Sequence record: NC_021531.1
Length of the DNA: 64,000 nt
Reading direction: 5' to 3' (one strand)
The notes under the pieces were generated by a model. The model saw only the letters and a program-made list of their open reading frames with translations, was not told the DNA's origin and searched no databases. This document shows positions 34,861 to 37,445 of the stretch, in pieces. A program made the translations under genes and the position numbers. Position 1 is the stretch's first letter. Each line of letters begins with the position of its first letter.

Positions 34861-37023
34861 ATGAGTCAAGAAACTGAAAACCAAGGTCGCCCATTTATGG
34901 GTGGCCCTGCTCACCATGTGGACGAAGCACTGCCGTCCGCTGAAGACCATGGCTTCAAAAAGATTGATGAAGAGGATTACGATCCGGAAGCCGCCCGTAA
35001 ACTGTGGTTAGAAACACGTGAGCGTGAGCGCAAAGCCGCACTGGAGGCAGGGAATGGTGGTGAAAGTGGCAATAGTGGGGGGCATGCCTCTCCGACTGCG
35101 CGCGTTATCAATCCAAGCGCTCCTGCTGGCGGGCGTGCAGATAGCGAGCGAGCAGGAAGTGGAACAGGACAGGAAGTCGAGACAGCCGTTCACCGACACG
35201 TCGATCCTACCCCTGTGCAAATCCCTGTTCAGCAGCCCGTGGAACGGCAAGTTTCCACAGCACCCGCCGCACGAGCTGCATCCGAAGCAGTTCCACACGT
35301 TGACGCTGCCCCGGCACAGCCGCAGCATGCGCCGACCCAAACGCAGGAAGTGACGCATGGCATCAAGCAAGAAACCACGCAAGCGCAAGGCGCGGAAAGC
35401 GTTTTACAACGACCAGCGTCTGGCGGACAGGAACGAGGACATGTCCAACAACCTGTCTCGCCAGTCAGCCCAGCTCAACAGCCAGCTGCAGATGCTGCGC
35501 CGGCCGCAGCAGCGGATGACTCAGCTACGGACAAGACGCGTCGCATAGCGTCCCTGCTGGAATCTCCGGTACCGCGTGGTGAACGTAGCGAGTTGATGAA
35601 ACTCGATGACGATGACCCGGTTGGTATGTTGTCGGGTATGGCACTGGTCGGTGGTCTGCGTAATCTGGCGCAGTCATCCAAAAGCTTCAATGCGTTCTTC
35701 CGTACGCTGGAGCGTAATCAGGAAGGTCATCCGGTCTTCCGTTCGCCGCAAGAAGAGGATATCTACAACCGCATCCTGCAGATTATGCAGATCGCGTCCC
35801 CTTCTATGCAGAACGGTAATCAGGCTCAGTCCGAAGCTGCGCTGCGTGAAGACATCCAATGGCGTCAGGAACTCGATACCGGTTCAGATGAGAAGTTCGT
35901 CATCAAGAACCATCCGAAACAAGCGCACGGTTTGATGAAGTCTATCTACCGTCGTCAGAACTCGGGTGCGCCGGTTACGGTATTCCTACCTGCGTCGGGT
36001 TTCTTTATCACGTCGAAAGCGCCGCATGAAAACGATTTCTGCGACTACGACGTGGCGCAGACCATGGATACCAATCAGGTAGGTCTGTCGACCTTCGGTA
36101 TTCTGCTGTCCGCATCGTCTGGCCTGTATCTGAAGCACATGGTTAACTTCGCCCTGAAATTCGTCGTGGATACCACGCTCGATATCGGCGACGGTGACAT
36201 GCATCAGACGCTGTATGCGAAAATCGATGAACGTGACTACTGGCTGGTTGTCATGGCATGCACCATTGCGAAATACCCAGGCGGTATTCCGTGGCTGATG
36301 TCATGTACTGAACCGCAGTGTACGTTTGAAGAAGAGCAGAAGCTGAACATCGCCCGCTGCATTCGTTACGCGAACGGGATTCTGTCGCCGACTCAGCTGG
36401 CCATCATTAACCGCCAGCGTGAAGGTGAACCGTTAACCTTCGACCAGCAGAACGAGTATCGTCGTCAGCACGTGGTTGACCCATCCTCCAAATGGGAAGA
36501 CAACGACCTGACCTTCCGCTTTGCTCACGCGTCAATTGCTCGTTATATTGACACGTCTGAAGAGTGGGTGGCGGACATTAACCAGTCCACGACCGATGCG
36601 TTGGGTAACTATGCGACAGAGCAAGAGCGTAACAGCTACATGCGTACTGCCGCAGAGACCCGTCGTCTGACTCGTTACCTGCACTTCATCGAATCCATCA
36701 CTGCGAAAGCAGAAGGTGATGATGAGCCGTACGTTGAACGCGACCCGATTAAAATCCGTGAAGCGCTGGTTGCATTGTCTTCTGACCGTGCATTCGTTTC
36801 ACGCTTTGAAGCGGCTATCGAGAAGTTCAACGAGCGCAGTCGTCTGGCCATCTTTGGCTACATGTCCCATCGCTGTCCGCAGTGTGGTGCACAGACGGGT
36901 GAGAAAGATGGCGCGTTCCGTGGTATCGTTGAGATTTCACCGGACAGACTTTTTTTCGTGCTCTCTCGAGTGGTGTACGAGATTCAGAAACTCTTAACCG
37001 ATCAATACGAAAATATTGGTTAG
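34861..37023 (+). CDS. tail/baseplate-hub assembly chaperone-like protein (phiKZ gp77-like; T4 gp26-type zinc motifs) with disordered N-terminus
   Basis: CTEPQC and CPQCG pairs, C-terminal RLFF, ~230-aa P/A/Q-rich N-terminus; function is inference. Confidence 0.6.
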   Translation: MSQETENQGRPFMGGPAHHVDEALPSAEDHGFKKIDEEDYDPEAARKLWLETRERERKAALEAGNGGESGNSGGHASPTARVINPSAPAGGRADSERAGSGTGQEVETAVHRHVDPTPVQIPVQQPVERQVSTAPAARAASEAVPHVDAAPAQPQHAPTQTQEVTHGIKQETTQAQGAESVLQRPASGGQERGHVQQPVSPVSPAQQPAADAAPAAAADDSATDKTRRIASLLESPVPRGERSELMKLDDDDPVGMLSGMALVGGLRNLAQSSKSFNAFFRTLERNQEGHPVFRSPQEEDIYNRILQIMQIASPSMQNGNQAQSEAALREDIQWRQELDTGSDEKFVIKNHPKQAHGLMKSIYRRQNSGAPVTVFLPASGFFITSKAPHENDFCDYDVAQTMDTNQVGLSTFGILLSASSGLYLKHMVNFALKFVVDTTLDIGDGDMHQTLYAKIDERDYWLVVMACTIAKYPGGIPWLMSCTEPQCTFEEEQKLNIARCIRYANGILSPTQLAIINRQREGEPLTFDQQNEYRRQHVVDPSSKWEDNDLTFRFAHASIARYIDTSEEWVADINQSTTDALGNYATEQERNSYMRTAAETRRLTRYLHFIESITAKAEGDDEPYVERDPIKIREALVALSSDRAFVSRFEAAIEKFNERSRLAIFGYMSHRCPQCGAQTGEKDGAFRGIVEISPDRLFFVLSRVVYEIQKLLTDQYENIG
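36951..36957 (+). promoter_or_regulatory. -1 ribosomal frameshift slippery site U UUU UUC
   Basis: In frame within CTT TTT TTC; the -1 frame is open 36933-37412. Confidence 0.7.
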
Positions 37024-37412
37024 ACAACGTCGGCTTAAGCCATGAAACCCTGATTAACACGCTTAAGCTTGACACCACCTCTCTGTTTAAGCGTCGCGAT
37101 CATCGGGCCGTGACCTACCAAGAAGCGTTTGACGAGCTGATGGCCTCGTACGACGCCTCCTTGGAATTAGACACGGGGCGGTTTCACGTGGGGATGTCCA
37201 GTCAGGAAGACCCACTTGCTAACTCGCTGTACCAGATATGGGTGGAGACGTTCATTCGTGAGGATGTTTTCAAGTATACCGGGATGAACCTTGACCAGTT
37301 CTTAGACCAGCCGCGTTGGAAGATTGAGATGCAGTTAAAAGCTATCAAGCGTCGCCATCAGGACGAGAACGCACTGGCCACCGAAATACAGAACAGCCTA
37401 CCGAAAGACTAA
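36957..37412 (+). CDS. -1 frameshift extension (GT-type C-terminal domain); otherwise 100-aa ORF from GTG 37110
   Basis: No stop in this frame from 36933 to 37409, no ATG before 37110, weak SD at 37110. Confidence 0.65.
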   Translation, partial: RALSSGVRDSETLNRSIRKYWLDNVGLSHETLINTLKLDTTSLFKRRDHRAVTYQEAFDELMASYDASLELDTGRFHVGMSSQEDPLANSLYQIWVETFIREDVFKYTGMNLDQFLDQPRWKIEMQLKAIKRRHQDENALATEIQNSLPKD

Positions 37413-37414
37413 AC

Positions 37415-37445
37415 GGGTGCCCTTCGGGGCACCTTTCTTTTTTTG
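37415..37445 (+). terminator. intrinsic terminator
   Basis: GGTGCCC-TTCG-GGGCACC plus T tract. Confidence 0.85.

Follow-up and report, generated by a model that had tools for sequence, protein, structure and literature searches.

A conserved T-run points to probable programmed -1 frameshifting in core gene cg18 of nucleus-forming jumbo phages

Are two neighboring reading frames of a jumbo phage, annotated as separate genes, in fact one gene that is read in two frames? This question is raised by CR5_040 and CR5_041 of Cronobacter phage CR5 (NC_021531; genus Derbicusvirus), which lie in the window analyzed here, i.e., the first 64 kb of the genome (matched at 100% identity). CR5_040 (34861-37023, on the + strand like all features of this locus described below; hereafter ORF1, for open reading frame 1) encodes a 0-frame product of 720 amino acids (aa) and 79.7 kDa. 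It ends at a TAG codon (37021-37023), belongs to PHROG families 8054/4585, and is a member of core gene cg18 of the Chimalliviridae. CR5_041 is annotated in GenBank at 37188-37412 as a 74-aa protein that starts from an ATG at 37188, but this is merely the 3' part of a longer frame. This frame lies in -1 relative to ORF1 and is open over 36933-37412 (159 codons plus stop), with a TGA at 36930-36932 upstream and a TAA at 37410-37412 at its end. It overlaps ORF1 over 91 nucleotides (nt; 36933-37023) and extends 129 codons past the ORF1 stop. Within the overlap lies a T-run, T7 followed by C (36950-36957; T7 at 36950-36956). On comparative sequence evidence, we consider it probable, though far from certain, that CR5_040 and CR5_041 constitute one gene that is recoded by programmed -1 ribosomal frameshifting, giving isoforms of ~80 and ~95 kDa.

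The T-run would thus be a proposed recoding signal within an intact gene and not a lesion. The 0-frame codons at this position are CTT TTT TTC (36949-36957), which places the heptamer T_TTT_TTC (36951-36957) in the X_XXY_YYZ phase of a slippery site. The heptamer encodes a conserved Phe-Phe (codons 698-699), and TTC, codon 699, is followed by 21 sense codons before the stop. Most ribosomes would remain in the 0 frame, terminate at 37021 and produce the 720-aa, ~80-kDa protein. A fraction would slip back one base at the heptamer, where two tRNA-Phe could re-pair on the run, and would then read the -1 frame to 37410, yielding an isoform of ~850 aa and ~95 kDa. This long isoform would have its first 699 residues in common with ORF1, whereas the 21-residue tail of the 0 frame would be replaced by an extension of 151 aa, which belongs to PHROG 7580/12109 and is predicted to be all-helical. 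A preliminary description of this DNA, made from the sequence alone, had located the heptamer, ORF1 and the -1 frame, all at the correct coordinates. The two product sizes it proposed also agree with the computed masses, which are 79.7 kDa for the short form and about 94.9 kDa for the 850-residue trans-frame product (summed from the two pieces).

Is such an arrangement remarkable in a single genome? The heptamer by itself is not special, as the window contains 15 copies of TTTTTTC where 13.7 are expected. The long ORFs of the window contain 54 in-phase heptamers, and behind five of these the -1 frame stays open for at least 139 codons. In one of the five, a pair of ORFs that served as a control (529-1026 and 1026-1526), an in-phase T_TTA_AAA is found 16 codons before the stop and is followed by a -1 continuation of 183 codons. 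There, the next ORF starts with an ATG that overlaps the stop and is preceded by a G-rich stretch, which represents ordinary coupling. Since one genome alone does not rise above chance, the case rests on the comparison with relatives, and in this comparison of sequences the significance of the arrangement is strong.

The arrangement was read directly in 31 loci, of which 29 are concordant and two, SEGD1 and RTH11, depart. In the concordant loci, the extension frame is the -1 frame and opens 6-190 nt upstream of a run of T5-T8, which encodes the conserved Phe-Phe (Leu-Phe in pVa-21 and Phe-Leu in AgentSmith). From the run to the ORF1 stop, the frame is never closed, and it continues 123-163 aa beyond that stop. 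These loci span ORF1 identities down to ~20% and include those of RAY, SL2 (phiKZ-type), Haymo, Centimanus, RSL2, Aeromonas phage D6, Psa21, DT01, PA1C, SPN3US, RP12, pVa-21, Goslar, PCH45, Vibrio phage Yong MS32 and Bacillus phage AgentSmith, as well as two uncultured lineages from independent metagenome assemblies. The run has a length of T8 in RAY, RSL2 and Goslar, of T6 in D6, Psa21 and Yong MS32, and of T5 in pVa-21 and PA1C. The region in which a shift is permitted is only 49-67 nt long in Psa21, SL2, pVa-21 and AgentSmith, and it always includes the run. Measured from the run, the extension comprises 151-173 aa in all 19 loci measured, and it is homologous throughout the family, with 18 of the 19 matching phrog_12109. 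An identical T7C and an overlap of the same length, 91 nt, are found in the other four Derbicusvirus genomes, whose nucleotide identity is 77-81%. AgentSmith (vB_BspM_AgentSmith; locus L032, 580-2732) has an in-phase T_TTT_TTA and an open -1 frame of 171 codons. Since a phage recorded on a Bacillus host thus carries the same gene, the arrangement may be older than the Gram-negative chimalliviruses.

Relatives beyond these loci were reached with tblastn, which detected ORF1 homologs in 209 phage records. A related-locus search with a single protein returned only the known Derbicusvirus genomes, and word-indexed protein searches gave few matches. Two tblastn searches were run separately, one with ORF1 up to the run and the other with the -1 frame from the run onward. 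In the SPN3US group, with ORF1 identities of ~38-42%, the two pieces meet on one and the same nucleotide in all records listed in both tables except SEGD1; these include SPN3US, phiEaH2, Asesino, Huxley, Machina, Wellington/Kwan, ChrisDB, Caitlin and STsAS. The pieces also abut or map in a -1 relation in phiKZ (PHIKZ077 followed by PHIKZ076.4), PhiPA3 (074/073), Phabio, Noxifer, 201phi2-1 and Viktualia, and the same junction was found in 18 of the 18 phiKZ-type isolates listed in both tables. The preliminary description had proposed a -1 recoding site giving a fusion of ~850 aa and had looked to relatives of the type of SPN3US, phiKZ, 201phi2-1 and Goslar for its conservation. The T-run and the open -1 frame are indeed kept there, and their distribution is far wider than had been guessed.

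Is the site conserved merely because the protein needs two phenylalanines at this position? The residue preceding the Phe-Phe varies (Leu, Val, Gly, Thr or Tyr), yet 13 of 16 clades have a T at the wobble position of its codon and use TTT for the first Phe. Overall, just 34% of the Phe codons in these genes are TTT and 30% of all codons end in T, which gives a null expectation of 0.10 for the slippery codon choice (binomial P = 4.5e-11). None of the nine other Phe-Phe pairs in these genes has the slippery form. Judged by this codon choice, the slippery site is kept beyond what the encoded residues require.

The overlap carries a further trace of selection. Around the run, ~48 nt are almost invariant among 13 genomes of the CR5/SPN3US super-clade, although their ORF1 proteins are only ~41% identical. 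In these genomes, the fractions of variable sites at the three 0-frame codon positions are 0.24, 0.67 and 0.57 in the overlap, against 0.66, 0.54 and 0.97 in ORF1 upstream of it and 0.77, 0.59 and 0.98 in the extension past the ORF1 stop, counted there in its own frame. Read from these substitution patterns, the overlap bears the signature of two frames that are both under purifying selection. Such a dual-coding constraint implies that the short tail of the 0 frame is real, and two products are therefore to be expected. The comparison shows the signal, its conservation and the selection on both frames; that it is the ribosome that slips, how often it does so and that both isoforms are functional are inferred.

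Several observations weigh against such programmed frameshifting. The support for the putative trans-frame protein is wholly comparative. Among the departing records, SEGD1 (L007) was deposited as one ORF of 795 aa in a single frame, and in RTH11 (L018) the extension lies in the +1 frame relative to the annotated upstream frame. Three clades, i.e., those of pVa-21, Psa21 and PA1C, are without a perfect heptamer, and pVa-21 has an ATG with a Shine-Dalgarno (SD)-like motif in the extension frame. An uncertain candidate hairpin with a 5-base-pair stem and a 9-nt loop starts 6 nt past the heptamer (36964-36982), but it is weak (about -6 kcal/mol), invariant and thus without covariation, thermodynamically unremarkable, and broken in Kwan. 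The 60-nt segments downstream of the run fold no better than shuffled sequences in 15 clades (z-scores from -2.6 to +1.1), with RP12 (-2.6) as the sole exception. Finally, RNA polymerase could slip on a homopolymer run just as well. These points bear on different alternatives, which are weighed in turn below.

The two departing records bear on the possibility of an artefact or of decay, i.e., that a homopolymer sequencing error was made or that the gene was broken once by a frameshift in CR5. Homopolymer runs are error-prone, and SEGD1 and RTH11, as deposited, each differ from their relatives by one single-base length difference. However, the same configuration is shared by dozens of genomes that were sequenced in many laboratories and on many platforms, in addition to the two independent metagenome assemblies, and the stop of the 0-frame tail is conserved, 21 codons past the run, in 13 of 13 genomes of the CR5/SPN3US super-clade. 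Moreover, the fused ORF of SEGD1 reads a short conserved stretch out of frame. The departure of SEGD1 is therefore likely to be a deposition error, and both departures are probably due to errors in deposition or assembly. An artefact is hardly credible and, as far as the deposited sequences allow one to judge, already refuted by the distribution of the arrangement.

Could the extension instead be a second gene with a start of its own? In CR5, no ATG, GTG or TTG is present in the -1 frame before a GTG at 37110, and no start is conserved across the relatives, which bears out the earlier suggestion that the downstream ORF is not independently initiated. Clades differ in where the first ATG, GTG or TTG of the extension frame occurs, namely 12-84 codons past the run, and no SD-like motif was found at the extension starts in the clades examined, except in pVa-21. 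The start-free stretch that follows the ORF1 stop is conserved as protein solely in the extension frame. When CR5 was compared with SPN3US, Kwan and Huxley, this stretch scored 70-77 in the extension frame and 21-37 in the other frames, and the 72 start-free codons of SL2 scored 124-129 against PA1C and Psa21, with 23-37 in the other frames (for SL2 versus PA1C, 124 versus 23 and 37). Furthermore, the tblastn alignments of the extension begin at the first residue past the run. By this comparison, the trans-frame region is under purifying selection while possessing no conserved initiation signal of its own.

According to the alternative of two separate genes, the downstream ORF is translated by coupling, by re-initiation near the ORF1 stop or from non-canonical starts, and the open -1 frame is incidental. 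Every depositor annotated two ORFs, with the exception of the single ORF in the SEGD1 record, and starts are indeed present near the ORF1 stop in some phages: an ATG on the stop in RP12, a start at +9 nt in RSL2, a GTG at +12 in Asesino and an ATG at +18 in Centimanus. The ATG with the SD-like motif in pVa-21 can be added to these. A HMMER search against 1.84 billion representatives yielded no clean in-frame natural fusion, which is also compatible with two genes. Against this alternative, no start codon is conserved across the family, and in CR5, SL2/phiKZ, RAY, D6, ChrisDB and L029, an uncultured relative, the first candidate start lies 51-84 codons into the region that is conserved as protein. 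Two incidentally adjacent genes would also not account for an extension frame that remains open between the run and the ORF1 stop in all 29 concordant loci, nor for the dual-coding constraint in the overlap, and they leave the codon choice at the run unexplained. The existence of two genes is therefore improbable, and independent initiation, like the artefact, fits the data poorly.

One metagenomic protein, P0019 (312 aa), was considered as a natural fusion and rejected. It starts inside the ORF1 domain and enters the extension frame, but it skips the conserved CxxC/zinc-finger stretch and looks like a frame-scrambled fragment.

The starts annotated for the downstream ORF differ widely between records. 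In RAY, gp266 (L010, 3388-3936) begins before the run and shares 136 nt with gp267, whilst in phiKZ-type records just a short 3' piece of the extension is annotated and ~320 nt are left unannotated.

The transcriptional layout was also considered. In CR5, no terminator-like or promoter-like site is found from the ORF1 stop to the end of the extension, and an intrinsic terminator, consisting of an 8-base-pair GC-rich stem and a T tract (37415-37444), lies 3 nt past the extension stop. ORF1 and the extension would accordingly form one transcription unit that is closed by a single terminator, an arrangement that we count in favor of recoding.

If the two frames are joined, is it the ribosome or the RNA polymerase that slips? 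Heptamers of the type H_HH.U_UU.Y are among the most efficient -1 shifters in Escherichia coli, where U_UU.Y ranks second among the tetramers, and insertion sequence (IS) elements make use of U_UU.U_UU.C (Sharma et al., 2014; PMC4066793). The three clades that lack the perfect heptamer, pVa-21, Psa21 and PA1C, nonetheless retain an in-phase U_UU.Y. Slippage of the ribosome is favored here because the motif belongs to a class that is efficient in E. coli and because the heptamer-less clades keep this tetramer in phase. Neither a consensus fold nor folding per clade revealed a convincing stimulatory RNA structure and, since no stimulator was found, the shift may be of low efficiency.

Alternatively, an RNA polymerase, i.e., the virion or the non-virion multisubunit enzyme of the phage, could stutter on the T-run and produce mRNAs of altered run length, from which the same long isoform would be translated. 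Hybrids of rU:dA are a classical substrate for slippage (reviewed in PMC5009743), and E. coli genes avoid runs of seven U in each of the three frames, in part on account of slippage (PMC4066793). The lack of a detectable ribosomal stimulator and the length of eight T that the run reaches in RAY, RSL2 and Goslar are compatible with this explanation as well. However, runs of T5, as in pVa-21 and PA1C, and of T6, as in D6, Psa21 and Yong MS32, are short for efficient slippage, and the in-phase U_UU.Y is still kept in these phages. Moreover, conservation concerns not run length as such but the X_XXY_YYZ phase of ribosomal slipping and a T at the wobble position of the variable preceding codon, although the phase is partly set by the Phe-Phe codons themselves. 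Transcriptional slippage is thus a rather unlikely alternative to ribosomal frameshifting.

A more elaborate scenario may be mentioned. The non-canonical multisubunit RNA polymerase of the phage might realign on the T-run inside the phage nucleus, or phage factors binding to host ribosomes might tune the rate of slipping. In that case, the isoform ratio would act as a programmed, stage-dependent switch older than the divergence of the jumbo phages of Gram-negative bacteria from those of Bacillus. This is speculative, and we consider it distinctly unlikely.

What, then, is the protein that would be made in two forms? Based on tblastn and shared PHROGs, ORF1 of CR5 corresponds to Chimalliviridae core gene cg18 (phiKZ gp077/Goslar gp081/RAY gp267). 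The notes in the PA1C record, together with tblastn, likewise identify the gene as the homolog of phiKZ gp77. The cg18 product is listed as a hypothetical protein in Table S3 of Prichard et al. (2023; PMC10299810), and a search of the supplementary files of that study revealed neither the downstream ORF (RAY gp266) nor a frameshift in cg18. Full-text searches of the literature likewise gave no report of a frameshift in the phiKZ gp77/cg18 family; mentions of "gp77" there refer to the numbering of other phages. In CR5, the gene is surrounded by two genes for RNA polymerase β subunits, a helicase gene, small hypothetical genes, a gene for another RNA polymerase subunit and a DNA polymerase gene. 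Its relatives keep it in the same block, beside cg19 and cg20, which are genes of the virion RNA polymerase. Thus, cg18 sits in a transcription/replication gene block. Its product is probably a non-virion protein.

Searches with single sequences and with profiles of 14 and 19 members revealed no match of ORF1 or of the extension in Pfam, NCBIfam, the PDB or annotated PHROGs; only unannotated PHROG families were found. AlphaFold2 models were poor, with a predicted local distance difference test (pLDDT) score of 59 for ORF1 residues 322-720 and of 53 for the extension, which was modeled as all-helical, and a Foldseek search of the PDB with the first, poor model gave no match at E <= 0.001. A single phmmer match of 50 extension residues to the small subunit of archaeo-eukaryotic primases (E 0.26) was dismissed, as it was absent with the 19-sequence profile.

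The preliminary description had noted two CxxC pairs in ORF1. One is present as such (C672-x2-C675; 36874-36885), but the other is a C-x4-C (C482-x4-C487; 36304-36321). In an alignment of 14 relatives, both pairs are present in 12 and both are absent in two, the Ralstonia phages RSL2 and RP12. Since the pairs are kept together and lost together, the alignment suggests that they form a single metal site of four cysteines.

The same description had assigned the gene to tail or baseplate assembly, as a chaperone of the G/GT type or of the type of T4 gp26, and had seen a resemblance of the extension to GT-type tails. The latter has no support. The likeness to tail chaperones is formal and consists of the -1 shift near the 3' end, the C-terminally extended minor form and the lack of a strong stimulator; in addition, three GenBank records bear the label "baseplate hub assembly protein". 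This label, however, exists solely as a note of the depositors in a few records and was reproduced by no test. The neighbors encode RNA polymerase subunits, a helicase and a DNA polymerase, and neither a tube gene nor a tape-measure gene is found among them. The absence of a tape-measure gene had been correctly noted before. No match to a tail or baseplate family was found in Pfam, PHROGs, NCBIfam or the PDB with 14-19 relatives, the cg18 protein exceeds the size of a tail chaperone 5-7-fold, and the preprint on the Goslar virion structure, which models 28 different virion proteins, makes no mention of Goslar gp081 in its text. With respect to T4 gp26 in particular, no baseplate family of Pfam or PHROG was matched at E <= 0.1 in 14 relatives, no PDB match was obtained by sequence or, with the poor model, by fold, and T4-like phages do not figure in the organism tallies or among the matches listed of the 209 tblastn hits of ORF1. 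A role as tail or baseplate chaperone is therefore very improbable.

How does the proposed recoding of cg18 compare with known systems? In long-tailed phages, for which the G/GT genes of lambda are the type, a -1 slip near the 3' end of an upstream ORF yields a minor, C-terminally extended protein, and this arrangement is conserved across divergent phages. Recoding of cg18 would be similar in the position of the -1 slip, in a minor form with the same N-terminal part as the major product, and in being conserved among phages that have diverged widely; at cg18, too, a strong RNA stimulator is not evident. In contrast, cg18 shows no sequence or profile similarity to these genes, it is located in a transcription/replication context and not between the tube and tape-measure genes, and its ORF1 encodes 476-720 aa versus ~100-150 aa for a tail chaperone.

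In IS elements of the IS1 and IS3 families, X_XX.Z_ZZ.N heptamers fuse two overlapping ORFs, ORFA and ORFB, and both U_UU.U_UU.C and U_UU.Y are used (PMC4066793), just as proposed here. Whereas the IS signals are usually accompanied by a downstream hairpin or pseudoknot, and sometimes by an upstream SD-like element, none of these could be demonstrated at cg18, and the proteins are unrelated. Another parallel is dnaX, a gene in a replication context whose one mRNA gives rise to both the tau and the gamma isoform through a -1 shift at a homopolymeric heptamer (reviewed in PMC5009743). The dnaX isoforms are made in a fixed ratio, and in some bacteria transcriptional slippage achieves the same outcome. 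However, the shifted product of dnaX is the shorter one and strong stimulators flank the site, whilst at cg18 the shifted product would be longer and no stimulators were found. The mechanism proposed for cg18 is thus of a known kind, whereas the instance is new and conserved family-wide.

The fully annotated records examined, except that of SEGD1, present cg18, a gene common to all nucleus-forming jumbo phages, as two unrelated "hypothetical proteins" whose starts are arbitrary. If cg18 is one recoded gene, these annotations would be corrected, a conserved extension domain would be added to the core proteome of the nucleus-forming jumbo phages, and cg18 would be one of the rare phage genes, away from the tail-chaperone locus, whose -1 recoding signal is deeply conserved. 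A pair of isoforms in a fixed ratio would then be a likely functional feature of this uncharacterized core protein. The question lends itself to a direct test in phiKZ- or Goslar-infected cells by ribosome profiling, proteomics and RNA-seq.

Some minor features of the locus and its surroundings are worth recording. The N-terminal ~250 residues of ORF1 (34861-35610) are of low complexity, with Pro, Ala, Gln, Gly, Ser, Thr and Glu accounting for 0.53-0.72 of the residues and a GC content of up to 0.62. This part is variable or without a counterpart in many relatives, in which ORF1 comprises 476-650 aa. In the uncultured relative L029, a large gene upstream of the locus (1-504) has a weak LAGLIDADG match, possibly reflecting insertion of a homing endonuclease or an intein. 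Finally, T-runs of at least seven residues are strongly strand-biased in the window, with 15 on the + strand versus one on the - strand, and at least one of them (37438-37444) is the tail of a terminator.

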